Part shown: piece by piece, positions 1 through 64,000 of the stretch
Layout: the number at the start of each line of letters is the position of its first letter
Position numbering within the stretch: position 1 is the first letter of the stretch
NCBI GenBank assembly: GCA_965153285.1
Contig: OZ229117.1
DNA from: Podarcis tiliguerta
Lineage: Eukaryota
Direction: 5' to 3' (one strand)
DNA: 64,000 bases
Program-made: the position numbers and the translations under genes
Notes under the pieces: generated by a model
Told to the model about the DNA's origin: nothing
Database searches by the model: none
What the model saw: the letters and a program-made list of their open reading frames with translations, nothing else

Positions 1-3000
1 CTACAGTACAGGGTCTGGTCTCTCTGTCATCCTTCCCTCTCTCCCGCCACAGCTCACCTCCATCAGTCAGGCTGCCTCTGCTCAGGGTGAGAGCCTGAGG
101 CAGCTGCTCATCTCACTGTGGTGGTGCAGTAGCAGCCAGTGACATCCTGCTCTCTTTTCCCACCCCAGATTTTCCTGCCCCGGGTTGTGCCTTCAGCCCC
201 TGCCGAGCCAGATGCCCTCCTCTCTCTGGGGGAGGCCCTCCTTCTGACTGCAAACGTGACATGGACAGGGGGATCCCTGATGATCCACGCTCACCTGGAA
301 CCTGTGGGGCCTCTGGAGCTCTTCCTGCAGCCGAGCGAACAGCTCTGGGAGCCCATTGAGCCCAACGTCGGCCTGGGTATAGCAAGGGGACAGAAGAGCT
401 GGCTTCTGCTTCCACTTTCGACCTGGGGAGGGTGAGGACCTCTTCCTAAAATGGTTTCCCTTTTGTGTCCCCCCCCCCGCCCCCATCTCCTGCAGATGGC
501 TACACTTGGCTAGTGAAGGAGGAAGTTCTTCGTGACCTGAGAGGAGCCCTTCAGTTCCTGGTGGTGCCACTGAACCTCTCTGCTAGCCAGGGTCCTGCCA
601 CCTTACATGTCAGCACCTATGGGATCCAGTGCGTCTCCCGGCACCTGCCTGATGCCCAGTGGCAAGAGGCAGGCTGCAAGGTGAGTCTTGGCGTTCAAGA
701 AACAAAGGGAATCTGGGTACCTTGCGCCCCCTACTGCCGGAGGCAGGGAAGAATCAGAATCTGGTCCTTAAAAACACTTCTATCCCATTTCAAGACCAGA
801 CTGCCTGCTTCTTTATTTAAAGCATCTGGATCTCTGTTTTGTGAGAAATATCCAAGGTGATCTGCTGCCCAGAAGCGCCCTTAATCCCCACCCTGTTTGC
901 AGGTAGGAGAGAGCAGCAGCCTGGCGGAAGGCCACTGCCTCTGCACCCACCTCTCCTTCTTTGGCAGCAGCTTCTGGGTGGTGCCAGTCCAGCTGGATGT
1001 GGTGCGCACAGCAGAGTACTTTAGCCAGGTGAACAAGAACCCAGTTCTGGTCGTGGTCCTGGGAGTCGTCTATGCCCTCTACTTGGTGGGGGTGGCCTGG
1101 GCCCGCTGGTTGGATACACGCCCCCTGCACCAGGTAAGTTGCTGGGGGGTGAGAGGGCCAGAGGTAAGGGGGGGGGGTCTGGCAGCAAGCAGCACAAACT
1201 CACAGGCCCTTGGCAGCTCTCAGGTGGTGATGCTCCCAGAAGGGCAGGTCATGCAGCAACAGCCGCCATTTGGAGACTGAACCCTTGGAGGGTCTCCAGC
1301 TGCTCTCCCACGTCATGTGGAGAGGAAAGGACTCTGATCTCCTCACCCTCCACCCCAAAAGAGTGTGGCTGGCTAGGGACGGGGAAGGCTTCCTATTTGC
1401 TACAAATGGTCATGACTGCATTGTGCTCTCTATAAACATACAGCTGAGTGAGATGCAGCTAACTCTGTTCTGTCTAATGATTCCATGTGGATTTAAGGTT
1501 TGCATATCTTTTTGCCAGCAAAAGAGATCCCCTTATTCTGGTCTTCACTGGGGCCAAGTGGGAAGGACAACTGTATGTATGGGGCTTCAGCACTCTCTGC
1601 TCTCCTGCGCTGCTCCGTGGCAGAGCATGACCCTAGAAACGCCACCCCTCACACCCGTTCTCCCTCTCCCAGGCAGGGCCAGCCCTCCTGTCCGATGATG
1701 ATCCCTGTGCCCAGTACGGCTACCTGCTCCAGATCTGCCTGCATGGCCAGCAGAAGGCCCCCGGAGGCAGCCCCTGTGTGAGTGGTCTGCCCTGAGTGAT
1801 GGAGGGGGTGGGGTGCCTGGTCTTTGCCCCAGAGCTCACCCAGCCCTGTCATCTCCAGCAGGTCTGCATCTGCCTGCAGGGATCGTCTGGTGTCAGCAAG
1901 CCTCGGCGCCTGCCCCTGGAAGCCAGCCTCTTCCTCCTACGGGAGCCATACCCACTGGGAGAGCTCCAGAGTATTTGGTTGTGGCAGGAGCCCCACTCCG
2001 CCCCACAGCTGCCCTGGTCAGTCTGCCGAGAAGTAGGGTGGGTGGGTGACATCCCACTTGGAGACATTGTGCTGGCATGCGGACACTGCCCACCTCCCAT
2101 GGGGTGCCAGCCTGCCTCTGCTGGACATGCCACAATTCTCCCTCTCTCTGAATGGGGCAGAGGTGGTTATTGTGTCAGGGTGACCATCCTCAGGCATCCG
2201 AGAGGAGGCGGGGCTGGGGGGGGGTCAGCACACCTGGCACTTATCCAGCAGGGAGGCCTCTTGCCTCTGCCTGGCAGGACTTTCTTCCAAGTGGGGCACT
2301 AGGAGCACCAGCCTCCTGCCTGGCACTCACTACCCATCCCCTTCCCTCAGGCAAAGCGCCCACATCACAGTGCGAGACCTGCAGCAAAGTAGGAGGTTCC
2401 ATTTCTCTTGCCAGCCGTGGCACGTCCCAGCAGCAGGGGCCCCACACAGCACCGCCCAGCATTTCCTAGCAGCTCCACAGCACCAGCTAACAGCATTCTG
2501 GTAGGCTTACCAAGAGACGGGGGAGTCTGTTTGGGTGTCCTCAGCCCCCACCTGCCCACTGTGCATGAACTTAGCAGGGATCTCCGAACCGCCTCCTCCC
2601 AGGCAGAGCTGGAGACTCCATCTGTCTTCCTCCTCTGGCTCTCCCATAGCCTGGCCTTGGGTCCTGCTCCCACCCATCTATCTACCACTCTCTCTGCAGG
2701 CCCATCTTCCGGCAAAGGACTCTGAGCGGTCTTCGGGAGGAGCACACAGTGCTGACAGTGCTGCTGACCCGGACAGGCCACGGGCGGCCCGTCACGCGGG
2801 TCCAGGGCCTCTCCTGCGGCTTCTGCCTCCTCCTCTGCTCTGCACTTGTCAGCCTCATGTTCTGGGAGGTGCCCCATGATTCACCCGAGCTCCTGAATGT
2901 TGGTAAGGGTTGTGCCACACGGGATATCTCCCAAGGGCCACTGGCATGGAAAAGGGGGCTGTGCAACTCCTCTGCTCCAACTTCTGCCAGTGGAGGAAAG

Positions 3001-5702
3001 TCCCTCCTGCCACAACTGGAGGGACAAACGCAGTCATACCCTTTGGGCCGGCAGGAGGGACGTTCATGTATTAGGACTTCAGAAGAGCCTGGGTGCAGCT
3101 GGATCAGGCCAACTGCAGGTGGGATCTTCTCACACAATGGCCACCCGATGCCTCCTGGGAAGCCCTGATCCCCCACCCCCTGAATCTAGAGGTATCCTGC
3201 CTCTGATTGTGCAGGTAGCAGTTGGTGCCTCCTTCCAGCTTCCTTGGGGCACGAAGAGTAGTGACTGGTAGGTCCACTTGCAGGCACTTTCCCCCCCTGT
3301 TGATACACAGGCAGCTGCTTCTCCCTCTCCTGGAAGGACATCATGATCAGTGTGGAGAGTGCCTTGATTACCTTCCCCGTCAACTTGCTCCTTGTATTCA
3401 TCTTCCGCCACGCTGAACCACGCAAGAGCCATGCAAAGCCCGGCCTGGCAACGGCTGTGCCCAGCGCCCCTGCCAGCCCAACAACCCTGGACACTGTGCA
3501 TGAGGTAGGGACAAGAGCTCTCCAGGACCCAGGACATTTCCCCCATTGTGCCTCCCCTTGGAATAAGGTCAAGGCTGAGCTGGCAGTGGACAACAACCCC
3601 CACCCGATCCCCAGCTACCTCTCCCCCAAGCCCGCCAGGATCCTTCTTGCACCAGTGAACTTGGTCCCAGGGAGACGTTTTTGCATTTGCAGATACAACA
3701 AGCACTGGCTTGCCAGAGATTTTTCTCTGTGGCACTTATGGGGTGGCTTTTAATAGGTAGGAGAGGATATGTTAATGGTAATTTATCCCTCCAGGTGCCC
3801 ACATTTGTGGGTTGAACATACAAGGTGATCAGCTTATCGCTTCGTTAAAAACACAGGGCTGAGCAGAGTTCAAAGTCTCATCAGCAGAAAAATAGAAAGC
3901 ATAGGAAAAGGCTGTGAAGCATTCATTAAATTCAGTCCAGCCACAAAGCAAGCTGGTTGCCCCTTAACAAATAACCAGACAGACTGAGAAGTAAGTTTAA
4001 AATATGTTTACTTACTCATAGTCATGCAATTGTTCTCAGCAGCAACAGCAGTAAAATACATGCAGGCAAAATACTTATATTTACAGTATGAACAGCTTGA
4101 GGCATGTGGCCAATGCCGGAGTGATAGGATATATGTCTGCTCCATTGCTGGTTGAAGAGAAAAGAGAGAGGGAAGGAACAGGAAATACCTTGAGTCTTCA
4201 TTCCCAAGAGAGGAGGGGAAATGACCCCACACAGAACCATCTCTACCAATTACATTTCTATGGATTGAGTCTGTCTTTCAATAATGTGACCCTATGGTCT
4301 TAACCCCTTCACATGCTAGCTCACAAAAATATGCATTGTTAGATTTGGCTGCAAATCTCCCACAGCACTTCTCCCATCTGCTACATCTTCTTGTGCCCAG
4401 CTTTGCCCACCTTACCCTCAGCCTGTTGGGTGCATTTGTGCCCCAGTCGCCTGCCACTCTCCCATCTACCCATGCTTGTCTTTCCCTCCCTAGAGCCTGC
4501 GCGGGGCAGTGGAGACGCTGAGCAAAGCCAGCAAGCAGAGCCAACAGCTGCTACATCCCGACATGGACCTTGAGGAGCTTCTGCAGTGGCTGGCTCGTTT
4601 TATCCACCCTGATCCTGGAGAGGAAGAGGAGGCAGCAGGTGAGAGCCCAGCCATGCCTGCCTGCCTTGGGCAGCCCTGCTAGACTCCCAGAGGATGGTGA
4701 CGCTGTGGCTTCTGCTTGCAGGGAGGGAGCCCAAGATCTCCAGTGTGGCACCCAGCCCTGATGCGCTGCACCAGACCTACTGCAACCGCTACCTCCTCCT
4801 GAAGCTGCGGCACATTTCCCGTCTCCTGGGGGAGCTGGAACCAGGAGTCTCGACAGCCAAGCACCCTCCGGCTCTGCAGCAGCGTGTGGAGGAGATGGCC
4901 AGGCGTCTTGAGCTAGCAAGCCCCATCCGGTCTCGCTCCATGTAGGTAGCTCAAACAGGCTCCATGAGCAGGCAGGGAAGCCTACCCTGCAGAGCCTCCT
5001 CCTCATGCCTTCCTCTTGTTCCTCCACAGCCGAAGGTGGCACTTGCCCTGGTGGGGCGCCTGGGTGGGGTGGGCCCTGCTAGTCTCCCTCAGCGCAGTGG
5101 CCACCTTCTTCTCCTTGCTCTATGGCTTCCACTATGGCAAGGAGAGCACCGAACGCTGGCTCATCTCCACTGCCATCTCCATGGGCCAGGCTCTCTTCGT
5201 CCTGCAGCCTCTCAAGGTACTTCCCAGCCAGGCTGAGCAAACCCAGCATTCCTGGGGGGGTCTTCTCACGGGAGGTCGGGTTGCCAGACCTCTTAAGTCT
5301 GATCTGAAGTCTTCAGGTTTGCCTAGTACCCTCCAGGTGGCAGGTGAAGGGCTTGAATCGCTAGATGGGTGAGAGTTCCAGTGGTGTGTGTGTGTGTGCA
5401 CAGAAGACTGTGTATAGAGCGTGCACACTTTGGACCAGCAGGAGCTGGATGCAAATTATAGCATAGACACTCTGGGGGACTACCTCCACTCTTCTCCTAA
5501 TTAACCTCTGTCTCTAGGACCCTTGTGACTATACCAGGGTCTGTGCCCCTGACGCCACCAGGGGCAGCCCCTAGGTTTGGGCCCTGAAATCTCAGGGTCT
5601 GTGATATTCCTCAACTGGCAACGCATAGGGGAGGGGACATCTCAGCAGTAGCAGAAATCACGGTGCACATACTTCTTCCTCATCTCAAGTATGTGTCTGC
5701 CG

Positions 5703-5734
<32 letters not shown>

Positions 5735-6088
5735 GGACAGGTGTCTGGCATTGGAGCACTGCAAACACCCACTGCATCTCCTCTCTTCTTCCCATGAATT
5801 TCAAGAGGGTGGGGGAGAAATTAACCAAAACACCCTCACACATACACCAGTTTGTTGTGGTGTTTTGGCACAAAGTGAGGGGCTTGGCTCATCTGGAGAA
5901 AGGGAAGCCTACAGATGCTCCCTCTGTTTTATGGATGGGGGGGGGGGGCAAAATGGCTGCGGATCCTGCCCATCCCTCTTCTCCCATGAAACCCACTGCA
6001 GGTGATAAGCTTTGCCATCTTCTGTGCCCTGATACTGAAGAAAGCAGAGGATGAAGATGAGGCAGCCCTGGACCTCGAAGACCGGTAA
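1..6088 (+). CDS. PKD1L2-like polycystin paralog, 5' end outside window, C-terminally truncated (GPS + degenerate PLAT + 5 TM, no TRP-like channel module)
   Basis: Exons: <1-86, 169-376, 496-680, 903-1133, 1673-1777, 1862-2016, 2351-2500, 2700-2902, 3311-3504, 4494-4638, 4722-4941, 5030-5216, 6002-6088 (TAA). All introns are GT-AG with compatible phases; 2070 nt from 169 to the stop. GPS motif CLCTHL/SFFG. Motifs LPWW..VGW, LYGFHYGKES..RWLIS, QPLKVISFAIFCALILKK.EDEDE match my recollection of PKD1L2 better than PKD1L3. An alternative last exon at 6277-6397 is possible. Confidence 0.8.
5278..5624. mobile_element. Possible degenerate non-autonomous DNA transposon
   Basis: Short imperfect terminal inverted repeat GGGTTGCCA ... 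TGGCAACGC (8/9); no clear TSD. Confidence 0.3.
5697..5734. repeat. (CCTG)n microsatellite
   Basis: About 8-9 near-perfect CCTG units. Confidence 0.9.
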
Positions 6089-7171
6089 AGGGAGGAAGGA
6101 GGCTTGCAGAAGTTGAAAGGCAGGATGAATTGAAGGAGGGAAAGGGAAAGGGGTTTCCCCAGAGAGGGTTGGGGCCTGGACTGCCTCCAAGTAGAGAAGG
6201 GCAAAGGTGGCACTGAGAATGCCCTGCACCCACTGCAGAAAACAAACTCAAGTTCAAAAAATTCCTTTCACGACAGTGGCCAGGCAAGAGGAAGGGTTTT
6301 CAGTACTACGTCTGTTCCCTCTTCCACCTCCCGTAAGGGAAGGTTATGCAGACAGAGAGAAGAATCACGCCTCTCCACTTTGGATTGGCATGACTAGGAG
6401 CCCACCTGAACCATTCCTCTGCTGCTTTGAGTGGCCCGGCAAGGCATGCAGGCTTGGTGGAGGAATCCAGTTGCTGGTGTGGGCACCTCTGGTTGCCAAG
6501 AGCAGGTAGCCCAGGGCCCGCTCTGGGAGACTCAGAGGATGCAGAGTGGCTACACTAGGCATCTCCTGGGCTTGCTAAACAGGAAGGAAACTCATTGAAC
6601 TGAAGCCCCTGCACGGGCAGGACTGGGACTGTCCCCTGTGGAAGGGGAGAAGATTGGGGAGGGACTAAAAGGTAGTGACTGGCATGTGCACAGTGGGGTG
6701 GAGAGGAGTCACCACCCAGTGGCAGAGCAGCTGCTTTGCAGGCCCCCTGCCTTCCTAACTCTTGACACTCCCCATTAAAAAGATCTCGAGTAGTCTCTCT
6801 TTGCTCGTGGCCTTGAAACACCACTGCCAGTCAGACTAGAGCAGACATATTAGGTTACCCGTAATTTAACCATCCTAAGGGACACTGCAGCTCCAGGACT
6901 GGGGCCAAGGGAGTAGAAAATATGCTGGGAAGCAGTCCTAGGGCCCCATCCTGACCCACGTCTTCGACCTCTGTGATTGCAGGCTGTGCTCTTTCCAGTG
7001 ATGGGAGGACAACTTTCTTCGAGGCCACCTTGGCTTTTGCCACGCCATGTGCCCAAGACCTCCAATCAGCCTCTCCAACATGATGTCACCCACACCTGTA
7101 CAAAGGCCAGGACCATCTCTCTGGAGGAACGGGAGGGCACAGCATGGGAGGGGGACAGCGAAGTCCCATTC

Positions 7172-7689
7172 TGTAACCTGCCAATGGAGCCAACCCTGAA
7201 CTCACCGAGTGTTGAAAGAGTTGGGATGCAACTCAGCTTGCTGAGGGTTTGCATGAGGTTAAAGTGGATAGAGAAGGGAACCTCCAAGATTGTCTAACTG
7301 CCCTTTGATCTCTCTGATGACCTTTCCTTTACTATTAGACTGATATTCTTAGGGTTCCTGACAGTGACCAAACTTCCTGCTTCCCCCTCTTCCTTCTGAA
7401 GCTGAAGGAGAGGACATATATGGATGTATCTCTGCCGAGAGTAAAGAGCAAGCATGACTCCCTTGTAGCTTTAAGATAAATTAGCTAAAACTAGAAACTC
7501 TTTTCTATCCAAGTATATATTTCTTATAATAAATGGAGCTTTATTATATTCCAATTTTAAGTACTCTGTGTGTGATTGCAATGAAGGCAAGCCTCCTCTC
7601 CCCAGTAAGAAGTCCATGTGTGCTGTGTGCTATCTTGCAAAGTGATTCAGCACTAGGCGCAGCCCACACCGAATAAATGGCAGGCTACA
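7172..7689 (+). mobile_element. Solo LTR (518 bp)
   Basis: TG...CA ends with inverted termini TGTAACCTGCCA / TGGCAGGCTACA (11/12); 4-bp TSD-like flanks ATTC / GTTC; internal AATAAA at 7528-7533. Confidence 0.65.
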
Positions 7690-7876
7690 GTTCAGTGGTG
7701 TCCGTGGAAGCTCTCTTTCACTCTCTGATGACTTCATGATTGGCTTCTCAGGGGCCCAGGCCCAGATCCAGACACCCATTCCCACTTCAAACGCCATGGT
7801 GGCCCCCTGGCAGTGACATGCAGTAAATTGTAAAACCTCATGTGGCTGGCTGGAGACTCGCCAGCACTTGTCCAGA

Positions 7877-8018
7877 AGAATCAGAACTGTAGTGTTGGAA
7901 GGGACTGTGAGGGTCATCTACTCCTACCTCCTGAGGAATCCCACTAGCACAACCTCCCTGGAAGGAGGGTCCCTTCGCCTCCGTTTAGAAACCTCTAATG
8001 AAGGGGAGTCTGCCACCT
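7877..8018 (-). mobile_element. CR1-like LINE 3' fragment
   Basis: AGAATC..GTTGGAAGGGAC..GGTCATCT..AAACCTC..TGAAGGGGAGTC..CCACC resembles the reverse of a CR1 3' end. Confidence 0.5.
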
Positions 8019-8362
8019 TCCTGTCTGCCCCACTCCCCAACCCCTTGAAATCCCATTTCTTGTCACCCAAACTGCTTGGTTATCATACTGTTCTTTGGAG
8101 CAAGAGGAATGGGATGTGCCACCTGGGCTCTCAACATTTGCCTGCCAGCGTGCCTTTTATGCAGCAGACAATGCAGTTGCTCCTCCTTTCTTCCTTGCAG
8201 GGGTGCAGACAATGGCACCCTCTTCTTTGCAAACAAGAGGGCCCATCTCCAGCTGGAGCGCCAGGTGCTGCACCTGTTCAGCCTCTGGGTGTGGCGCTGC
8301 TCTGCTCCTCTTTTCAGCAGCTCCCCCACCTGCTTTCTCAGCTCGTGGGCTGAGCGTGCACG

Positions 8363-8400
8363 GTGGGGGGGGGGGGAGGGCGGCGGTTTAGACTATTAAA
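8363..8400 (+). promoter_or_regulatory. Putative PKD1L3 core promoter
   Basis: G-run/GC-box-like GGGAGGGCGG followed by TATTAAA (8394-8400), about 40 nt before the ATG at 8440. Confidence 0.4.
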
Positions 8401-8439
8401 GGGTGGCCCCGGGCCAGCTTGCTCCAAAGAGGGAGCGGC

Positions 8440-11400
8440 ATGGGGCTCCCTATAGGGATGTGGCTCTGGCTCTGGGCCGCACAGGTCTCTTCGGAGGAAT
8501 CGGAGCCCGCCTGCCTGCCCGTGGCAGGAGAGGACTGCTATCGGCTGCTCCGGTGGCCACAACCCGCCTTGGGTGCAGTGATTTTGTGCAGACGATTCCA
8601 CGGCCGGCTCCTCCACACGTGGAACCAGCAGATCCAGGACGCCCTGCGCGACCGCCTGGACGACAGCAGCAAAACCTGGATCGGGGCTGCAGCAAAGGCG
8701 CTCCCAGAAGTGCGCCACCCTGGCGAAGGTGAGAGCGGAGCGGGGGCGCAGAGGCCCAACAGCAGCACCACAGAAGAGGGGCAGCAGCAGCCAATTCCAG
8801 TATACTCTCCCGGGATGTGTGTTATTCCCCACTCAGCATCTCTGACTCGCCCAGACGCCAAACCCCTCAGGGCAAGACCGCCACCCTCCCTACACAAGGT
8901 GGGACCACCGTCTCCTCGTGGGGATCGAGGCGGGGCAGCCAAGCTTCTCACTTCAAGGGCCCAGCCAGGCCCTGCAGACCCTTCCCTCCGTCGAGGGACC
9001 CCGCCCACCAGCGTTTCAAGGACACTCAGGGTGGCAACCCTCCTCCCATGCCAAGCCCCGCTGCTGATGGCTCAGCTCTGCAGTCTGTGACAGGCAGTCA
9101 AGGAGTGGGGAGGGTTAAAAATAAGAATAATGCAAGGCTGTCCGAGGGTTTGCTACCAGGCACTCACCCTATGCAAAGGCTCCCCTTAAACCACTTGCCA
9201 CCACTGGGAGACTCTAGACACTGGAGAGGGAGCGGAGCCCTACAGGGCAGCCTCAGCCGGAAAGCCTTATCCTAAGAAAATCCCTCAAAGGCAAACAACT
9301 GGCGGGCTGGTGCTGAGTGTGGGGTGGCGGGGAAGAGGGATAACCGTGTCTGACGGCGGCGCCTACTCTCCGCAGACCACTGCAAAGTCCTCGTCCGGAA
9401 TGGGGACCACTTCTATACCAGGAGGGAGGAGTGTGACCAGAAGTACTTTTTCATCTGCCAGTCTGGTGCGTGAGTCTGCCCACCCCCCGGGGTGGGAGTT
9501 CGCGGCCTCCAGCTTCAAAGAGCGAGAAGGACCTCGTGGCTGAGCCGAGGATGAGACTCTCTGGAAGCACGCCTCTGGAAGCACCCCCCACGAAGCACGC
9601 CCTTCAGAGGTGGCTGCAACCCCGGAGGCAGGGCCAGGGCCAGGCTCTCCCGAGGCGGCTGGGCTGGGCCGTCGCAGGTCCTAGAACCATCCCTGACGCC
9701 CCGGAAGCGCCGCTTCCATGAATCCTCCCGAGCTCAACCCCTTCTGCTCTCTGTCCGCTACAGGCCCCCCGAGGACGCCCCGAGAGACTTCCACGCCCTG
9801 GGTGGTAAGTTCCCGCCAAAGCAGGTGCCTGCGCAGCCGTCGAACAGGAACGGGAGAAGGCTCTCTAGGCCGCCGTCGCTGCGCAGCGCCCCCTGGGCTG
9901 ACTGCAGCGCACTACCGAGCAGCCGGCCCTGGTGACTCTCTCTCCCTGTCTCCCAGAGAACGACCTGCCAACATTTGACGTGCGGCCCGACGGAGGCGAC
10001 TCCCATTCTCACCGAAGAGCCGACGGCGACTGCTCCTCTGAGCGCCCAGCCCTCCGCCGCGACTCCTCCGCCGCCCAGTCCTCCTCCAAGAAGCAGCACA
10101 GTTCGCCAGCCGACCACCGCTGACATCCAGTCATTCCTTGGGACCAGGCCAGAACTCGGCACTCCCCGCCATCCGCCGAGCAGCCCCAAGTCGGCATCCA
10201 GCACCTGGCCAGCCGGCAACAGCAGCCAGACTCACCCCAACTCTCGGCCCTTAGCCCCAGAGCCCAGCACTCAGCCGCTGCCCACCAGCAAAACCACCTC
10301 GGGGGGTACCAAAAGCCACGAGTCCAACACCAGCCCGGACTCCTTCACCTTCAGCCCTAGAGACTTCCCCCCTGAGGACCAGGGGAAGGTAGGGAGACAT
10401 CTGGACTGGCACCTGCCCCCACCCTGGTAGCACCTTGTCCAGACAGGCTCTCCTCTCTCTCCGTCCCATACCCCACACCCTGCTCCGGAGATGCCAGGAG
10501 GTGGGGTGGTGTGTGCGTTGCAGGATTCTTCCTTTGCACCTGGAAAAAGCAACGCTGAGGTGCAGATCAAAGATGAGTGTGACTCGTATGTGATTTCCCA
10601 GGGATTCAAAGTCACTTAATGAGTGATTTCCAGACTGGTTTTGCCTACAGCAGAAAGGGGGGCAAGTGGCTCTGGGGAGGTGTGGGGGGATGTGTGGCTC
10701 CCTCCTGCCTAACTGCCTTTTCAGATCTTCCCCCTATAGGGTAGAGGAGCCTTCCTAGAATTATAGATTTAGCGATAAGCTCTACTTGCAGGCTCACTGA
10801 CAGCGTAATAGGGCAACCAGGCCCCCTTCTCCCCCAGCCCCTCTCACTCAGGGTCTGTCCCACAGGCCCTAGAGAAGGTGCTGCACCAGTTCAGCCAGGC
10901 TGTGGAGACCCCAGACCACCCTATGGCACTGGAGCAGGCAGCCCGGATGCTGGAGAATTTGACAAATTTCCATGCTCTGCTCTCAGACGATGCCCAGGTA
11001 CTGGCATGTGGCAGGGAGGGAGGGAGGGTGGGTGGGTGGCACCCCTGATCTAAGGGTCTGTCCCCTGTGGCCTATTCTCCCAGTCCTTGGTTGAACCAGG
11101 CTCTACCCAGGCTATGTACAGAGGCAAGCCTGCCCCTTGGCACAGCCAGCCTCGCCCTTGCATCCCCAAATCAGCCCCGCCAGATGACCAGCCCTGCCTT
11201 GTTCCTACAGGCCTCTGCCAGCCAGGCACTCCTCTCCCTGAGCTCTCAGCTACTGAGGGACCACCCTGCCAGCAATGCCTCCTGCCTAGACCTCACATCA
11301 CAGGCTCTTTTCCAGGCCCTCAGCAACCTCCTCCAAGCCTCAGGCAGCCAGACACCCAGCTTCGGCCCACAACAGGTGGGGGAGAAAGAGGACCTGCAGG

Positions 11401-14400
11401 GGTCGGGTGGAGGAGGCTATTCTGACCTGCTCCTTCCTCCTTCACTCTTTCCCAGGCCAGCAGAAGGATGGGGTTGCCAGCTCAGGCCTGCTGCATGGCT
11501 GGGTCTCATTCTGAAGGCACCCCCTTTTGTCCAGGCCTTCCCATTGCTCTGAGCCCATGGGAAGGGAGCTGAGCTTCCCGGCTCCCCACCCTGGCTCTGC
11601 CCAGCTCTTGACCACACCTGGCCTTTCTGCAGCAGGAACGAACAGTCCTGGAAACAGCATTGGAAGCCCTTCCTCTGATCCAGATGGGGCTCCTGTTGGG
11701 AAGCTCCACCATGGAGGAATCCACAGTAACTGTGGTGTCTCCTGTGCTCAGCACCACCCTCAGCAGGTACCAGTCTCCTCTCTCCTAGGCACTGAAGAAG
11801 GGGGGGGGGCTTGCTCAGGGCAGCTGGGGAACTGAATGAATTGTTTGGTTGCCAATTACCTATTGGAATCCTTTTGGTACGCAGAGTAAGACATTGTTCA
11901 GAGAATGCATTTTGGTTAGGGGACAGACTTTTATGAGTTACAATCTCACACACAGGGATGTTTGTAGTTAAGATAAATAATAAAGGAGTCTATTACATTA
12001 TTTTTAAAATTATTACTACATTTATAACCCACTTTTTCTCCAAAAAGCTCAGGATAGCTCACATTCTCCTTTTTTCCATCTTATTCTCATAACAACCCTG
12101 CGAGGTAGGTTGGGGCTGAGAGATAGTGACTGGCCCAAAGTCACCCATTGGGTTTCATGGCTGAGAGGGGATTTGAACCCTGGTCTCCCACGTCCATGTC
12201 TCACACTCTAACCACATAGTTGGATAGAAAAGTTCTAGCCTAACAAGTCTAGCCTAACAAGTCTGTACTAGAGCATGGTAGCCATGCTGGCTCCTGTCTT
12301 ATCTGAGAGGATAATTCTTCTTGGAGAGAGAAATGTGAGAAGGAGCAGGAAGTTGTGAAACAGAGTGCAGCCTGAGAATATCAAAAGAGAAAGAGAGGTG
12401 AGCTGAAGAGGTTAATGACACAAAGGTAGTCTGGGAATCTGGAGGTCTCGAACTCTGTTCTATCTGTCCTAACCTACGCAAGACCCCTCTTCTGAAAATG
12501 GAGTTGCACTCAAACTTTCAACAGTAACCCCTCTCCCCACTCCCTACCAGGTGTGACAAAGCCTCCCTGCCCCATGCCTCCTTCCACCTGCTTCAGCCAA
12601 GGGGCCTGAACGTAACCTTCCCATCCAGCTCTGCTCTGGAGCCAGTTCTGAGCCAGCACCCTCAAGTACAAGTCCAGGTAAGGTGGTAGTGGCTTGCTGT
12701 CCGCTGGGTCCTTGTAGGGGGACATAGTGCAGGGCTGGCAGGGCGTGGAGGTGGGGCAGAGGGCACCCCCACAGCTTGCTCTTGCTCTCATCTTCACTCT
12801 AGGTGGCCTCCTTTGCATTCAATCCTTTCCGGCACCTGGATGGGAAGCCGATCAAAAGGATGGCAAGTATCGCTCTCATGGCCAGCGAAGAGTCCATCGG
12901 TGTCCACAATCTTGCAGAGGAAATAGAGGTGAGAATGGATACTGTACTGGAAAGTTCTCTCATCAGGGGGACTCTTCTCTCAGCACCCAAGTGGCATGGA
13001 GAAGCAGCGCTGTCCAAGGTCCAGCTCTGGATCAGAGATAAGCACTTTGTGCTGTATGGCCTGATGGGAGACAATATGTGCTCAAGGACCAGTGGGGGGA
13101 CGGACGGACTGCAGGGCTGACCATAGGCATTCTGTCTACTTCCAGATTGGGCTCAGTGCTGAGGCTAGTGCTGAGGCCCCTCACACTCACTTGACTGGCA
13201 ACGTCAGGAACTTTGACATTGTGGTAAACATCACATCAGTAGAGGATGCCTTGCTAGTATCGGTGGAATCCAGCACAGTGGTCCAGATCACCTTGCACCT
13301 GGGCCTCCAACCTGAGCCCAACAAGAACAGCAGCCTCCTCAACACCACCCTGCCCAGCAGTGGATGGCAAGAGGGTGAGGACTTGTTAGAAGGAAGCTAG
13401 AGGGCAGGTGCTGCTTTGGGACTTCCTATTGGAGCACCTGACTGACCTCTAGGAGAATAGTGCTGGACTAGAATGGCCATTGGCCTGATGCAGCAGGTTC
13501 TTCTTATGCTCGTACATACAACACAATGCTGCATGTATCCCCTTAAAAGTAAGTCTCATTGGAGTTCAGTGAAGTAACTCTCAGGTAAGTGGGCATAGCT
13601 TTGAGGTGTTAACTTCACCGGCTGTTCTGGGTTTCAGCCATAAGACATGACCTGTATGGCAGACTTCCTCAAGCTCGACCCTCCAGATGTTTTGAGACTA
13701 CAATTCCCATCATCCCTGACCACTGGTCCTGCTAGCTAGGGATCATGGGAGTTGTAGGCCAAAAACATCTGGAGGGCTGAGTTTAAGGAAGCCTGCTATA
13801 TGGGAACAATTTACCTCTATAAATAGGGAAAGTTGCAAAAGTATACAGATTGAATCAGCTGTGTTTCAATTATTTAATTGCCCATTAAATTCATTTAATT
13901 GCAAATTAACATGGTGTAGTGGTCAGATTTGCACTGTGGGAAACATCCACGGGAAATTTGATTTAAATCGCTTAGTTAAATCAGCCCGTTTCTTCATGTA
14001 CATAATTGACCAAACCACTTTGATTTAAATCTGTGCACCTGGGAGTAGGCACAGAGGGAGGGGCTTGAGGAGGTGGGGCCAGGCAGGACTGTGTCCCCAG
14101 TGGGGGAAGGTGTGGGTGAGGTCAGTGGGTGTGGTCCCTCTCTGCTCTCTTTGACTCACTGCTCTTGCTTCAGAGGGTACCTACACATGGGTGATTCCTC
14201 CAGAGGAGCTGCAGCATCATGGCCTGGGCACCTACTACATCTCTGCAGAGGTGGCTCCCCTCTCTCAGGGCCCCTGGAACCTCTCCATTCACACCATCAT
14301 CTCTGGATGCTACTACTGGTCCAGCCAGCATCAGGCCTGGAGAAGTGATGGATGCCGGGTATGCAGTAGGGTCAACCAGGCCAGAGGGCTGCAGGGCAGG

Positions 14401-17400
14401 CAAGCAAACCTTTGCTTCCATGCTGGGAGAAAAAAAACGTAGGGCGGAATGTCATGGGGAACCAAATGGAGCAGAACTATTGGGACCTCATCCTCCTGTG
14501 TTGGTTTCTAATGCATCAGTGCTTCCCTCCCAGGTGGGCTCCCAAAGCACCCTCCACAGCACCCAGTGCTTGTGCAACCACCTCACCTTCTTTGGGTGCG
14601 TCGCCTTGGTCCTGCCACACCTGATTGACCTTCACAACACTGCAAAGCTCCTGAGCACCGTGGGCCAGAACCCTTCTGGGCTGGCCTTGCTAAGCAGCTT
14701 GTTGCTGGGCTATGGAGCTGCCCTCGTTTGGGCTCGATGGAGACAGAGAACGGATGTTAAGAAGGTGAGGGGAAAGGGCAAGCAAAAGATTTATGATGGT
14801 GGTTTGGGGTTATTAGCATTTGCAGGCCAGAGACACCCACCCCCCATCTGCCCTCATTCAGGCCCTTCTTGTCTGATGTGCTGAAATGAGGAACAATGAA
14901 AGTTTTTCATTGGAAATGCAAACGGGTCATGAGAGAAGACATTTTACACCGTCTTTTTAGGGTATGAGATATTTATCCAGCAAACAGCTGAGAGCCAGAC
15001 ACCCTGGAAAAGCCGACTTGCTGAAGTGGGGCTTGGCCATTTCTAGGACCACCCACCCCATGTGTGTCTCTCCCCCCTCCAGGTGAAGGTCACAATCCTA
15101 GCAGATAATGAGGCCACCGCCTGCTTCCCTTACCTGGTGCAAGTCTTCACAGGCTACCGCCGAGGGGCTGGGACCTCTGCTAAGGTAGGGGAGGGTCTTA
15201 CTTCCCTGCAGGCCCACTTTGTATTGTTGATGGTACAAGTGCTGCCCATCAAGTTCCATGACCTTGGGCACCTGCCCACAGAATCTGGGCCGAGTCTGGC
15301 AGATCTCTCCCTATCGGGGAGTGGGTGTGTGGGGTGCAGGCTTCTGTGTGACTGGCTGCATGCAAAAGCCTGTCTTTGATGACATCCTTCATGTGCTCCC
15401 TGCTTGGGCAAGGAACTGAGGAAAGGAAGCAATCCATGAACCCCACCCAGCATCCGCCCTCTTTTCCCTTTCCTTGATTGACCCCTTCTCCCTCCTTGGC
15501 TTGAGGTTATCCTGACCCTCTATGGGGCAGAGGGCCGGAGTGAGCCACACCTGCTACAGCACCCCCAGGGGCCCTCCTTTGAGCGAGGTGGGCGGGATGC
15601 CTTCCTCCTTGCCACTCAGAAGTCCCTGGGCAACCTCCACGCCATCCGCCTCTGGCACGACAACACTGGGCCCAACCCCAGCTGGTAAGTCCATGGCCCA
15701 GAGAGGGCTGAGGGTGGGGGCCAAGAGGGTGGGGTTAGAGCGAACCAGACAGCAACTGGGATGCCAGGCAAGGAGGAGGTTGGAAGCACACGACTGGCGT
15801 GGGAGAGTCCGTTGGCAGCACCAGACCTTATCAGATGCTAGTAGGTGAAGGGACACTGCAGCTGGCATACCTAGTCCTCCCATGCCATGGGGTTGTGCTG
15901 CCAGGGCCTGGACACATGCAGAATTCCCAGGTCCTCAAAGATACCTCCTTTCGAGCCTATGCTGAAGAAATTCACAAGATCCCTGTCCAACTGTAGCAAA
16001 ACTAGCATCAGGTCAGTTGGACATTCCAGGGGGACGATGGAACTGTGGCATGGCTTGTCCCACCCAAGGTTCATGCTCACCATGTTAAAGGCCAGCTTTG
16101 GCTCCAGAGGCCACATTGTCATGTCAAATAATGCATATGACCCACCTTTGGTCTGAACCCCCAAACATAAAGGATACATCAGGGAGGGAATACGCTTCCA
16201 TCTCCAGTCTTTTCCCAAAGCTACTGGGCAAAGAATGCTTTATGTATAGGTTAACTTGGAGCAAAGCTTTCCTTGTGCTTGAAGGAAGCCACATGCAGCT
16301 CTCTGCTTTGGCAAGGTAATGAGGGCAGAAGGAAAAGATCCCCACTGCTTCCCTTTAACCTGCAGCTCTTGAGTGATGGGGGAGTGGGGGCAGATCCCTT
16401 GGCTGCAGCTAATGGGCACCACATGACTGCTTGGCAGTGCCACCCATGTGTGGGCAAACGACTGAAAGGCCTGAGCCTCCTGCAGGTTTGTGAGGCGGCT
16501 GGTTGTCTGTGACCTGTCTGCCAAGAAGAAGTGGCATTTCCTGTGTGACTCTTGGCTGGCAGCTGACCTGGATGACGGCCATGTGGATAAAGTCTTTGCT
16601 GCTGCCTCCGAGAGGGATCTCCTGTCCTTCAGGTAAATATGAGCCCCACCCACCCACCTCCTGCCAGTTTGTGGCATCTCTGGAATGTGTTTTTGCCCTT
16701 GGGGTTTTTCTGCCCCTGATCTACCCAACAGGTACCTTGCCTTTGACTGAATTATGCTAAGAACACCTGTGTGAAAAAGCAATATGCAGACATCAAAAAA
16801 TAAAAGTCGGAACGGCAGGCTTTGTCCCAGAATCTGCTTGGAATGACGAATCTCAGACCCAGTGAAGAAAGTTCCTTTGACTATACACAGAGAGGGCCTT
16901 TCTCTCCCACCCATCTGGGAGTTGGGTCTTCCTTCCAGGTCAGAGAGTATGATGCAGCTTCCAGCTCCTCTCCATTCAGAAATTATGTGCAGCAGGAAAG
17001 GACCCTGCTCCTGGCCCTTGACCCTCTCTGGCTCAGCCCCCACCAAATACATCCCTTATCCCACTTCACCAGGTACCAGTTCTGGTCAGGGCTGGTGGAC
17101 AAATTGACGCAGGAGCACCTGTGGCTGTCGGTGGTGACCTGCTCGCCCTGGAGCCCCTTCACCCGTGTCCAGAGGCTCTCCTGCTGCCTGGCCCTCCTCT
17201 GCTGCACCTTCCTCATCAACATCATGTTCTGGAGAAAAGAGGCAGGGTCCAGAAGCCCTGAGGCTGGTGAGTCGGCTGCCAGCTGGAGACTAGCATAGCC
17301 AGTGCCTTTCCTTGTCCCCTGCCCCAACATGATGCAGGTGGGCGCTGGGCTGGGGGCAGGTGAGTGGGTGGGGTAGGGAAGAGGCTGGCTTCCCACCACT

Positions 17401-20400
17401 TGCCGTGGCTCACAGCCCCCAAGGCAGAGCCCTGAAGGGTCCTGTATTTTTGCTCCTGTCCCCATGCTCCACCTTCCATGCATAGGGCTTGTGTGTCTCT
17501 AAGTAGCAATGAGGATTCTAAGCTTCACAATGGAGCTGGGAGTCCCCCTCTGCACCCCGCCCAGCATTTTTGGCATCAAAACTGCCTCAGCCACAGCAGT
17601 GATCCTTTCAGCCACCCCCTCCTCCTGACTGAAGGTCTCTGTCTGCCCCTCCTCTGCCCAGTGTGGTGTAGTGGTTAAGAGCGGTAGTCTCGTAATCTGG
17701 GGAACCGGGTTCGCGTCACCGCTCCTCCACATGCAGCTGCTGGGTGACCTTGGGCCAGTCACACTTCTCTGAAGTCTCTCAGCCCCACTCACCTCACAGA
17801 GTGTTTGTTGTGGGGGAGGAAGGGAAAGGAGAATGTTAGCCGCTTTGAGACTCCTTAAAGGGAGTGAAAGGCGGGATATCAAATCCAAACTCCTCCTCCT
17901 CCTCCTCCTCCCCCCCCTCGCTCCCGAGACAGGGCCTTTTATGGTGACTTGGCACGAGCTGCTGGTGAGTGTGGAAACAGCCATCTTCCTAATGCCAGTG
18001 AGCCTACTGATCAGCCACATCTTCCAGCTGGTCCAGCCCCCAGCCCCAAAGCCTCCGGCTACCAGCCCTGAACTCCTGCAGACTGTGATGCCTCCCAAGC
18101 AGGTGATGCCCATCACACGAGTCAAGCAGGTGAGACCCCCTCCTGACAAGTCCCTCCAGTCAGCAAGAGGTCCTGAGCGGTCAGTCTCCCAGCACCAGCC
18201 TCTGCCCTGATGGGTGCTTGGCACTCTTGCCCTGCTCTCTCCATTGCAGGAGCTGGAGGAGACCCTGGGCTTCCTCTACAAGAACAGCCTCTGCCAGTGC
18301 AGAGCCATGGACAAGTTCCCTGGGACTTCTGAGCAAGTACCAGAGCTTGTGTCTGCTCTGTGTGACCTCATTGAGTCCTACCTCCAGCACCAGAAGGACC
18401 TGGAAGGTCCCCCTCAGGGTAAGAGTAGCTTGTCTTGGCAACGGATGCGAACACCACTCCCTTCCTCTCAGACAGAGAGTGTGCCACCCTTCCTCATGCT
18501 CTGTGCACCAGTTTGTACCTTTGGGGGGCTGAGCAACCCTTGACTCAATTGGAAAGAGGGGGGGGAATTAAGGCTCTGTAGGGTGAGAGTGATGCCTCTT
18601 TGTACTTGTTTCCAGAGAGGCGCTTCAACCTCCACAGCTACCTGAGCCATGTGCTGAATGACTTGGGGACTCAGCTCCGCAGCCTGGATTTGTGCAGCTT
18701 TCCTAACCCCTATGACCATCTGCATGCAGTGGACCAACTACGGAGAGTCCAGCAGCACCTAGAGCAGCAGCAGGCCCAGCCCTGGCCCAGCCCTGAGGGG
18801 CCTGGCAGGTAGCCCCCATCTGGAAGCTCCCCTCATCTATCTCTTCCCCACTCTCCTGGCCCCATTTCCGGGTAACATTATGCAGAGATTGCTCCAAACC
18901 CAAAATAGTACTTGGGGAACAAGTTCCTCATTTGTAAGCTGCTGTGTGGCATCTACTGTACACACCCTACATATGTATACAAAGAAACACACCTAGCTAA
19001 GGCCAAAGTTCCTTCCATGAAATAGCTTGCAGGAAGAAACTAACCAGATGTCTTCACACTCCAGGGAATGCCTTCAGGGGCTGGGCGAGGAGGCAGGTCC
19101 TAGTTGCAGGAGATAGAAGCTGCCCCCCCCCCCAGGACTCACCAGTGAGGATGGGGGTCGCATATGCAGCAGAGTGCTCAAATGTCACCCAGAAACAGAG
19201 TGAGGCAACAGTCCAAGGTCACCACCGCAGTCGAGTTCAGGCAAGGTACAATGCAGCAAGGCAGGGCGATGAGAATCAGGAAATAAGGCACCAGAGACCT
19301 GTATTATTTCCTGCAACTAGAAGGCTCACTAGGGAGGCTTTATATGATACTCTTGTCTCCTAAACTACACTCATCCACAGCCACTGACTGCTTCCTCGCA
19401 AGCAGACTGCTGCCTCTGATTCCAGAGACTGGCAGGGGGAGCTGTTCCACCCCCTGTTCTGACAGTTCCAGGAGTTTTTCATCAGGTACTAACCTGGAGG
19501 GCCCCTGGATCTATAGGGTATCTGGTTCATCTTCAGAGGACTCTGTGTCTGGTCCCGTGTCACACTCAGACCCAAAGCCAGCCAGTTTTCCCAGCCCACC
19601 CAATAATGGTCTTTTTCTTAACTGCCTATTGCTTTTTCTGCTTGGTCTGTGGGACATTTGCCCTCCCCACTGCACAGTTCCCTCCCTCCACTGGTGTTCC
19701 CAAAAGCTGAGGTGCCATTTATTCTCCTGTCTCTGTGTCTCAGGCCCACCGGGCCCAGGAGCGAGCTCAGCAGTTTCCCACTTGAAGACCCTGAGAAGGA
19801 GAGGCCGCCGTTCTCCCACTGTCTCCCCGGGAGATTCAGCTTCGCCTGCTGGCTCACAGTGGGGAGCACCAGCTTGGTTTCGGCCTTCTTCACAGTGCTC
19901 TACAGCCTAGAAATGAGCAGGGACGAAGCTGGGCACTGGGCCATCAACATCCTGCTCTCAGTGCTACAGAACATCTTTGTAATGCAGCCCCTGAAGGTAA
20001 CTTGGTCCTACCTGGGGTGCAGTTAACCTCTCCCCACACCCTTGCCAGAGCCAGCATCTCCCCTCTTCTCCCTGCCTCTACAAATGTCTTTGGTGTTCTG
20101 TGATTCTGCAGCAACCCAGCAAGGTCAGAGGTCTGCAAGGATCCTCAGACCCCACATAAGTCCAGACTGGGTTTAATGCTTGTCCATCTCTCCCCCAATC
20201 TGCACCAGTAATGTGTGTAATGTTACTAACCATTCCATTTGTGGTGGGGCCTCTCTTGCATATTCTGCTAAGAGGGGCCCCAGACACCTGCCCTGTGGGG
20301 CCCCCCAATGGCAACCCTGTTCTCTCTCCTTCCCAGGCGTTGGCTCTGACCTTCCTCTTCTCACTGCTGCACAAGAGGGAGTTGTGGAAGGACAAGGGGC

Positions 20401-38300: not shown

Positions 38301-38897
38301 GAAAAAGCAGGTGGTGGCGCTGCTGCTGCTGTCAGCCCCACAGTGTATCCTGCTGGCATCCTCCTGGTGTGCAACAGCTGCGTGGCCTACCGCAAGCTTC
38401 TGGAAGCTCAAGCTCCAGGGGTTCGCAAGTGGGCCTTGCGAAGGCAGAACGAGCCCCTGGAGGTGCGGCTGCAGCGCCTGGAGCGAGAGCGCACAGCTAA
38501 GAAGAGCCGTCGAGACAACGAGACGCCGGAGGAGCGGGAGGTGAGGCGCATGAGGGATCGAGAGGCCAAGCGGCTGCAGCGCATGCAGGAGACGGACGAG
38601 CAGCGTGCACGCCGCCTGCAGCGGGACCGTGAAGCGATGCGCCTCAAGCGGGCCAGTGAGACCCCTGAGAAGCGGCAGGCTCGGCTCATCCGGGAGCGTG
38701 AAGCCAAGAGGCTAAAGCGGCGGCTGGAGAAAATGGACATGATGCTGCGGGCACAGTTTGGCCAGGACCCCTCGGCCATGGCTGCATTGGCAGCCGAGAT
38801 GAACTTCTTCCCACTGCCAGTGGGTGGGCTAGAGCTTGAGGGGCAGCTGCTTGGTAAAATGGCCTTTGAGGAGCCGAGTCCCAGTGCCCTGCACTGA
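35304..38897 (+). CDS. ZNF821: Zinc finger protein 821, about 427 aa
   Basis: Exons 35304-35343, 36363-36521, 36649-36791, 37315-37419, 37753-37919, 38228-38897; total 1284 nt. Starts MSRRKQTTPNKVHW; C2H2 finger CPVCGRALSSPGSLGRHLLIH; STPR repeats (ETPEEREVRR, ETDEQRARR, ETPEKRQAR); AATAAA at 39035-39040. Confidence 0.96.
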
Positions 38898-44664: not shown

Positions 44665-44859
44665 GGCGCTCGTTTCGGGAAGCTGCAAGGTGGGCTGCTG
44701 CTGCTGTCGCCGCCTCCTCCTCCTCCTGCTCAAGGGGGTCTCCGGGCGGGATCACCTGCAAAGACACAGAGAAGAGCACAGGGGTCAGCCGGGTGGGGGG
44801 GGGCAGGCGGGCGGCTTCCGCCCGGCGGGGGGAAGGGAGCCCCGGACACTCCTGTCGCT

Positions 44860-54768: not shown

Positions 54769-64000
<9,232 letters not shown>

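Follow-up and report, generated by a model that had tools for sequence, protein, structure and literature searches.

A 64,000-nt stretch of DNA from Podarcis tiliguerta (contig OZ229117.1 of assembly GCA_965153285.1; the whole stretch is referred to below as the window) raises the question of what a gene encoding only one half of a polycystin is doing immediately upstream of a full-length PKD1L3 gene. What usually defines a polycystin-1 protein is that its last six helices pair with PKD2-type channels, and the gene in question, at 169-7001 on the plus strand, stops short of that part. An earlier note on this DNA had proposed a separate gene upstream of PKD1L3 with the order GPS-TM1-PLAT-TM2-5 (TM, transmembrane helix) and no channel, and had taken it for an old tandem paralog. 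Our analysis bears this out, the paralog being far older than the note had implied. We favor the possibility that 169-7001 is a functional lacertid gene, orthologous to an ancient member of the polycystin-1 family that belongs to the PKD1L2/PKD1L3 branch and has no channel (probability roughly 0.8), and regard the identity of the gene and its conservation as marginally more secure still. The encoded protein has an extracellular GAIN domain with an intact GPS, followed after TM1 by a predicted PLAT-type beta-sandwich on the cytosolic side and, beyond TM2-TM5, by a short acidic tail in the cytosol.

Gene structure and the absence of a channel half

The window itself was handled exon by exon, and steps that required a whole protein were carried out with near-identical database proteins. 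Read in this way, 12 exons form a chain from 169 to 6084, all with AG/GT borders and in one open frame. The chain provides about 695 stop-free codons, for which the chance expectation is 1.4e-10 at the stop-codon frequency of introns (0.032 per codon), and exon GC content is 0.62, with 0.73 at third codon positions, versus 0.54 in introns. Peptides spanning 10 of the 12 junctions are found exactly in P. muralis XP_077787783 (isoform X1), including that across the weak donor at 376|377; one of the remaining two involves a NAGNAG acceptor (1859/1862) and the other carries two substitutions. The stretch begins inside the gene, and the 3' two-thirds of it are present. The 13 in-frame exons claimed in the earlier note are therefore sound as regards this chain, weak donor included, but not as regards an open AG...GT stretch at 53-86, which we rejected as an exon because its translation, in all three frames, is missing from the annotated lacertid proteins. 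The peptide of the annotated upstream exon (...ISVSNLSTPVQ) is absent from 1-168, placing the true exon 5' of the window start.

The 3' end can be fixed from the annotated lacertid proteins. These end in ...LEDR-LCS[FL]Q, which joins the donor at 6084|6085 to an acceptor at 6982|6983 and so gives a last coding exon at 6983-7001 that encodes (R)LCSFQ and closes with a TGA at 6999-7001. This end is identical to the C-terminus of the P. muralis protein, and the proteins of Sceloporus, Anolis and Pogona end in ...S[FLH]Q. The donor (CG|GTAAAG) had been correctly identified beforehand, but it had been joined to an acceptor at 6277 with a stop at TAG 6395-6397, an arrangement that no orthologue supports and that we rejected. 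The TAA at 6086-6088 is read only if the last intron is retained, in which case the protein is five residues shorter. AATAAA signals lie downstream of the stop at 7528 and 7672, and the 3' untranslated region probably runs to one of these.

Followed along the plus strand, the sequence in the window starts in the beta part of the GAIN domain (169-376), the most variable exon among lacertids, whose weak donor (GG|GTATAG) gives the junction NVGL-D-GYTW found in P. muralis and Lacerta agilis proteins. The first half of the GPS motif (C...W...GC) is encoded by the 185-nt exon at 496-680, and the cleavage motif, HCLCTHL|SFFG, together with TM1 (NPVLVVVLGVVYALYLVGVAWA), by the 231-nt exon at 903-1133. 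There follow a poorly conserved PLAT-like stretch, which starts at 1673-1777, continues at 1859-2016 and ends at 2351-2500, and then four more hydrophobic helices. TM2 is encoded at 2700-2902 and TM3 at 3311-3504, a cytosolic helical loop at 4494-4638 and 4722-4941, and TM4 with the start of TM5 (LPWW...QPLK) at 5030-5216, an exon 58% identical to the corresponding block of a bichir orthologue. The exon at 6002-6084 supplies the end of TM5 and the acidic tail (KKAEDEDEAALDLED); the acidic C-terminal tail of the gene reads KKAEDEDEAALDLEDR.

The relationship to PKD1L3 is evident at the level of the exons. When the exon peptides were searched against the rest of the window (tblastn), collinear counterparts with 27-41% identity were found in PKD1L3 at 14182-19996; the exon carrying the cleavage motif is 39% identical to 14534-14764, the TM4-TM5 exon is 34% identical to 19823-19996, and the exons at 1673-1777, 2351-2500 and 3311-3504 belong to the same collinear series. 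Intron phases are identical in seven exon pairs, two of which are also equal in length (185 nt, the counterpart being 14174-14358, and 231 nt). The other lengths differ by 3, 24, 3, 9 and 24 nt, all multiples of three, exon 1859-2016 being 24 nt shorter than its counterpart. Both the common intron phases and exon lengths and the strong divergence of the proteins had been pointed out in the earlier note, and both stand.

Some features of splicing deserve mention in their own right. The acceptor at 1856-1864 reads ccag|cag|GTC, and P. muralis isoforms differ there by one glutamine, so that the sites at 1859 and 1862 both appear to be used. Reading through the donor at 4941|4942 gives Met and a TAG at 4943-4945. 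Two short P. lilfordi isoforms, of 799 and 841 amino acids, end in just this way ('...SRSM') and would be without TM4-5. A (CTGC)n microsatellite is present at 5700-5735, within intron 12.

No channel exons had been seen before PKD1L3 starts at 8440, and our searches lead to the same conclusion. The post-TM5 halves of eight proteins were used as tblastn queries (rodent and fish PKD1L2, sturgeon, sawfish and lamprey proteins, a model from Amia, and agamid and cordylid PKD1L3); none found channel-like sequence in 1-8440 at E<=1, whereas each matched 6-10 exons of PKD1L3 at 20.0-25.4 kb. Nor did the open stretches of PKD1L3 that follow its own TM5 match anything significant in 1-8440 or 25.3-64 kb. 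That one exon is enough for detection is shown by Pfam, where a channel exon of PKD1L3 taken alone reaches E 1.4e-16 for PKD_channel. The protein of the window gene ends 19 residues after TM5 and thus lacks the 11 TM helices and the PF08016 domain that mark the polycystin-1 family, and PF08016 is absent in Pfam from all of the well-annotated orthologues (>100). The earlier note had listed an assembly error hiding channel exons among the findings that would refute a channel-less gene; the window contains no N at all.

The GPS residues (C...W...C...C-x-C-x-H-L|S, encoded in exons 496-680 and 903-1133) are invariant in an alignment of 40 proteins. PLAT is recognized by Pfam in fish and amphibian orthologues (E 1e-23 to 2e-10), with no match in lacertid proteins or in single window exons. 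Searches with ten single window exons gave nothing meaningful in Pfam, and exons 903-1133 and 5031-5216 had no match among PDB sequences (phmmer), diverged exons being too short for such comparisons. Lectin_C was found by Pfam in tarpon and several teleosts and not in the Zootoca (1209 amino acids), Pogona or P. raffonei models; the N-terminus of the window gene lies outside the window.

The fold was predicted with AlphaFold for the P. lilfordi protein, using an alignment of 40 orthologues (mean predicted local distance difference test score (pLDDT) 67, predicted template modelling score (pTM) 0.45). The model has a helical N-terminal part (residues 20-139), a beta part (146-401) that ends in the GPS strands, TM1 (423-448), a beta-sandwich in the position of PLAT (468-581, pLDDT mostly 75-87) and then four further long helices. 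The best PDB matches in Foldseek were the GAIN domains of BAI3 (4DLO), BAI2 (8OEK) and latrophilin (4DLQ), with E values of 3e-7 to 1e-6 and template modelling scores of about 0.5 on the target (best 0.53). The next were the PLAT domains of RAB6IP1, 5-lipoxygenase and pancreatic and lipoprotein lipases (E 4e-5 to 8e-4), the RAB6IP1 and lipase matches having root-mean-square deviations of 3.4-4.6 A over about 120 residues. For the TM part, the cryo-electron microscopy chains of PC1/PC2 and PKD1L3/PKD2L1 were not among the top matches.

Relatives, end point and age

The exhaustive protein search was run with exon 903-1133 as its one query. Its top match was P. lilfordi CAI5782254 (940 amino acids, 99% identity), and the 90% cluster of this protein holds P. 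muralis isoforms (936-938 amino acids) and the P. raffonei (1107) and Lacerta agilis (975) proteins, all under the database name polycystin-1-like protein 2. Annotation of the gene among lacertids extends over Podarcis, Lacerta and Zootoca, at 936-1209 amino acids, and the exon peptides of the window are 97.9, 97.2, 96.9 and 93.7% identical to the proteins of P. muralis, P. lilfordi, P. raffonei and L. agilis, respectively. The extra gene is no novelty of this genome: RefSeq already lists it for relatives, and a 2017 paper treats the fish orthologue under the name 'partial pkd1l3'.

Also among the matches of this search were bichir (956 and 962 amino acids), frog (1031 and 1123), bonefish and plaice proteins, which break off 18-57 residues past the TM4-TM5 block, where normal family members have 470-900 more residues. 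Word searches added more than 100 further annotated orthologues, from (i) squamates beyond Podarcis and Lacerta (Zootoca, Sceloporus, Anolis, Pogona and Lerista); (ii) amphibians (many anurans, a newt and a caecilian) and (iii) fishes (sturgeons, gar (W5MAE3), tarpon, eels and dozens of teleosts). These word-based searches found no orthologue in turtles, birds, crocodilians, snakes, geckos or mammals, which is a weak negative only. The TM4-5 block was present in 122 retrieved proteins, 104 of which end no more than 80 residues past it; PF08016 is found in all 17 that run on beyond it for more than 400 residues, and those of the 17 with a name are mostly PKD1L2a. Well-annotated members end 13-23 residues after TM5 in squamates and 18-34 in amphibians and fishes. 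A conserved stop position had been named beforehand as a check on the proposed gene, and such a position, 13-34 residues after TM5, is what we find across bony vertebrates. The ...S[FLH]Q tail is common to lacertids and iguanians, which indicates that the 19-nt last exon is conserved in both. Teleost C-termini vary, unlike those of squamates, and most amphibian orthologues end in [ST]-x-[LFI] (ETAL, ETMF, ETIL, ESIL, ESNL), an ending similar to class I PDZ-binding motifs.

Transcript-like sequences end at the same place. Seven Logan contigs of 2.7-5.3 kb contain uninterrupted open reading frames of 670-1112 codons (1035-1112 in six of them) that end 27-29 residues after TM5. As the gene has many introns and these reading frames have no interruption, the contigs must be spliced mRNAs of a frog relative and of teleosts.

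The age of the family was addressed with a careful IQ-TREE analysis of 42 GPS-to-TM5 cores under LG+C20+F+G4 by PMSF (posterior mean site frequency), in addition to quick versions; support is given as ultrafast bootstrap / SH-aLRT (Shimodaira-Hasegawa-like approximate likelihood ratio test). All 16 sampled channel-less genes, including those of plaice, Labeo, tarpon, sturgeon, bichir, frog, newt, caecilian and squamates and the core of the Amia model, form one clade (100/100). Its inner branching follows the species tree, with ray-finned fishes and tetrapods reciprocally grouped and squamates sister to amphibians. PKD1L3 of sturgeon and of amphibians, squamates and mammals forms a second clade (96/96), and tetrapod PKD1L3 (goat, jerboa and kangaroo rat among mammals, together with squamates and amphibians) is a separate clade with 100/100 support; it is the downstream gene of the window, not the channel-less gene, that matches PKD1L3. 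The 11-TM genes of skate and sawfish are a third branch of the channel-less/PKD1L3 group (95/91). True PKD1L2 (Peromyscus, Triplophysa, Gouania) is a clade of its own, likewise with 95/91 support, outside this group and does not contain the channel-less gene, and the lamprey sequence lies outside all of these branches.

The channel-less gene and PKD1L3 coexist in sturgeon, newt, frogs (Leptodactylus and Pelobates) and squamates. In sturgeon, the proteins of both paralogs are tabulated on contigs of one size (1.22 Mb), and in newt and Leptodactylus they are likewise tabulated on contigs of one size. Given this coexistence and the structure of the clades, the duplication predates the common ancestor of bony vertebrates, and the channel-less family is on this tree more than 400 million years old, older than the split between ray-finned fishes and tetrapods.

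Constraint in lacertids and competing readings

The note had held that the gene is still under selection, and an indirect test, on the alignment columns covered by the window, argues that this is so in lacertids. Among 155 columns that are invariant in eight fish and frog orthologues, a single one varies among five lacertids, compared with 52 of 494 others (odds ratio 18, Fisher p 7e-6); in the TM2 exon, 33 of 65 scored columns do not vary in fishes and frogs, and lacertids show no variation at any of the 33. Sites conserved since ancient times would not be spared under neutral decay, and it is for this reason that we consider constraint to persist. Frame and stop are kept in eight squamate species with full-length models, drawn from two families and the iguanian lineage. 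Lacertid-iguanian identity in matched exons is 56-59%, versus 63-68% in the neighbouring PKD1L3, suggesting that the lacertid rate is fast yet not in a different class from that of PKD1L3.

Several observations weigh against a fully functional gene in lacertids. The ancestral residue has been replaced in lacertids at 50 of the 155 deeply invariant sites, and the squamate stem carries 0.92 changes per site versus 0.17 for the amphibian stem. Pfam scores for PLAT fall from 73-85 bits in fishes and 69 in the newt to 42-54 in frogs, 33 in Sceloporus, 22 in Pogona and none in lacertids, and those for GPS are 17-23.6 bits in lacertids, about the cut-off of 22.5, versus 35-42 in fish and frog orthologues. 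This pattern of eroded domains, replaced sites and a long stem is compatible with partial loss of the ancestral function. Moreover, the fold prediction owes much to those orthologues in the alignment that are better conserved, and the N-termini of the annotated lacertid models disagree between species and isoforms. Only the 1209-amino-acid Zootoca model has a signal-peptide-like start among these, from which we judge most lacertid models to be probably 5'-incomplete.

Taken to its limit, this evidence would make the lacertid gene a decaying relic, its function lost on the squamate stem and its frame left open by chance or recent history, and the difference of 2-3% of residues between congeneric Podarcis species could be read in the same way as the undetected PLAT, the borderline GPS, the replaced sites and the long stem. 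We consider this improbable. The frame is intact and ends at the same stop in four Podarcis species including that of the window, in Lacerta, Zootoca, Sceloporus, Anolis and Pogona (the partial Lerista model is without the last residues). Furthermore, lacertid substitutions avoid anciently invariant sites 18-fold, the exon length differences relative to PKD1L3 preserve the frame throughout, and divergence is only slightly above that of PKD1L3 next door. These data would be better explained if change came in a burst on the squamate and lacertid stems and constraint then returned.

Two further alternatives question the borders of the gene. One is that 169-7001 is the 5' part of a long transcription unit that reads into PKD1L3 and yields a fusion or read-through product; the genes are on the same strand, only about 1.4 kb separates the stop at 7001 from the PKD1L3 ATG at 8440, and deposited models from Phrynocephalus forsythii (KAJ7311801, 2765 amino acids) and Pelobates cultripes (CAH2324014, 2401 amino acids) are fused in this manner. 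Both models are better regarded as fusion artefacts. They have an internal signal peptide and two GPS-PLAT units. In the former, the acidic tail runs straight into the PKD1L3 signal peptide (MEPPLGMWLALLLG, to be compared with MGLPIGMWLWLW at 8440 in the window), and the latter omits the short last exon that P. fuscus uses. RefSeq keeps the genes apart in Pelobates fuscus, Podarcis, Lacerta and Pogona, the last exon, short as it is, is conserved together with its stop, the two AATAAA signals precede a TATA-like box and the PKD1L3 start, and the mRNA-like Logan contigs end after TM5, all of which makes read-through very improbable. What the fused models do tell us is that the tandem order and strand are the same in an agamid and a frog. 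The other alternative, that an assembly gap conceals channel exons or that they are located elsewhere, giving a true protein with 11 TM helices, is one that we consider already largely refuted and to which we attach almost no weight. An Amia calva model (MBN3299417) does join a core of the channel-less type to a Polycystin_dom and PKD_channel half, and might be taken as proof of a channel once kept, but its halves have discordant phylogenies, the channel half grouping with the sturgeon PKD1L3-type gene (100) and the core with the channel-less clade (99). We therefore rejected it as such proof; the model is a chimera of two neighbouring genes. The absence of N and of channel-like sequence from the parts of the window searched, and of PF08016 from more than 100 annotated orthologues, speaks against hidden channel exons as well.

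Returning to the reading that we favor, an orthologue of an ancient channel-less gene still at work in lacertids, we can ask what such a protein would do. The last six helices of polycystin-1 or PKD1L3 take one protomer position beside three PKD2-type subunits. Because the channel-less protein is without S1-S6 and without the C-terminal coiled coil, it is not expected to be a pore subunit of a TRPP (PKD2-type) tetramer. Our tentative proposal, to which we would give somewhat less than even odds and which draws solely on domain content, a further point on the negative side, is that it is a pore-independent surface receptor or scaffold cleaved at HL|S. The ectodomain, a GAIN domain to which fishes add a C-type lectin, would be cleaved at this site, and the PLAT and TM1-5 unit would serve in membrane targeting or signalling. 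The protein may also act on PKD1L3/PKD2L1 complexes, PKD1L3 being the product of the adjoining gene. A burst of change in squamates, strongest in lacertids, would have eroded the PLAT signature, after which the protein would again have been held constant.

In the wider view, and with good if slightly lower confidence than for the lacertid gene itself, we propose that bony vertebrates have an unnamed fourth member of the PKD1L2/PKD1L3 group. It would have been channel-less since before the fish-tetrapod split and kept beside PKD1L3 for more than 400 million years, with an mRNA of its own, and these searches yielded no copy from mammals, birds, turtles or crocodilians.

Neighbouring genes and comparison with known systems

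The gene downstream, PKD1L3 (8440-25100, plus strand), is full-length. Its start, with an ATG and a signal peptide of its own, is at 8440; exons for GPS to TM5 occupy 14174-20441, past TM5 come a linker, TM6 and polycystin-domain and pore exons at 20.3-25.0 kb (channel exons 21613-25034), and the best matches of its exons are squamate PKD1L3 proteins at 55-87% identity. The TATA-like box referred to above lies between the AATAAA signals of the channel-less gene and the PKD1L3 start. To the right of PKD1L3 are a STPR/ZNF821-like open reading frame (38091-38897, plus strand), an ATXN1L-like gene (42679-44733, minus strand; AXH domain, E 7e-40) and an exon with an adaptin-N domain, AP1G1-like (57934-58419, plus strand), in the order found beside human PKD1L3. 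A GC-rich island is present at 34-35.5 kb.

For this lizard alone the finding is an ordinary one, as relatives already have the gene annotated in RefSeq. What is new is the coexistence with an intact PKD1L3, a clade of its own that predates the fish-tetrapod split, and the kept end point. What the GAIN-TM1-PLAT-TM2-5 half does by itself is a question in polycystic kidney disease research, where cleavage, tethered-agonist signalling and PLAT-dependent trafficking are at issue, and a gene limited to this half for more than 400 million years would amount to a natural experiment, one that is open to zebrafish and Xenopus genetics. If a fourth member exists as proposed, the TM1-5/PLAT half of polycystins would have a pore-independent function of its own, and the fish 'partial pkd1l3' would be a working gene. 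The record is also corrected with respect to the status of 'partial pkd1l3', the name 'PKD1L2' and the chimeric models deposited for Amia, Phrynocephalus and Pelobates cultripes.

The fish gene has been described before. England et al. 2017 (PMC5318412) reported a 'partial pkd1l3' in zebrafish (1083 amino acids with lectin, GPS and PLAT, located beside dhodh), other teleosts and spotted gar, and called it a remnant, PKD1L3 being lost in ray-finned fishes; no further analysis was given. In human, too, DHODH lies upstream of PKD1L3, and in the lizard the DNA upstream of the channel-less gene falls outside the window. Our literature search found no later treatment of the gene. The lizard gene and 'partial pkd1l3' belong to the same clade, with GPS and PLAT, no channel domain, a length of about 1000-1100 amino acids and a stop soon after TM5, and domain positions in plaice (GPS 491-529, PLAT 602-716) are close to those in zebrafish (493-531 and 604-713). 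They differ in that the lizard gene lies beside an intact PKD1L3, the lacertid copy is far more diverged and no lectin domain was detected in squamate models. Since the channel-less gene coexists with PKD1L3 in sturgeon, newt, frogs and lizard, the fish gene is a separate paralog rather than a remnant.

Within the polycystin-1 family, the closest comparison is with PKD1L3, which has the same intron phases, two of the exon lengths, the collinear GPS-TM1-PLAT-TM2-5 exons and the strand in common with the channel-less gene, but which has diverged to 27-41% identity and goes on with a linker, TM6, the polycystin domain and the pore where the channel-less gene stops. PKD1L2 is of the same subfamily, and the TM4-5 block is 57-59% identical to that of true PKD1L2 versus about 35% to that of PKD1L3. 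However, true PKD1L2, found in mammals and teleosts, is its own clade with 11 TM helices and a channel domain, and the name 'PKD1L2' given in databases to hundreds of channel-less proteins is a misnomer. Channel-less proteins of the PKD1 family are also known from the sea urchin, where SpREJ1 and SpREJ2 have lectin, GPS and PLAT with 1-2 TM helices, and four of the 10 SpREJs have a channel domain (PMC1934368). These are independent invertebrate lineages with other TM numbers, and no orthology is implied. Finally, the GAIN domains of adhesion G-protein-coupled receptors (BAI3, BAI2 and latrophilin) are the best structural match of the modelled ectodomain, and the GPS cysteines, the Trp and H-L|S are kept; in the window gene, the GAIN domain is followed not by the 7-TM bundle of such receptors but by a 5-TM bundle of the polycystin type with PLAT inserted.

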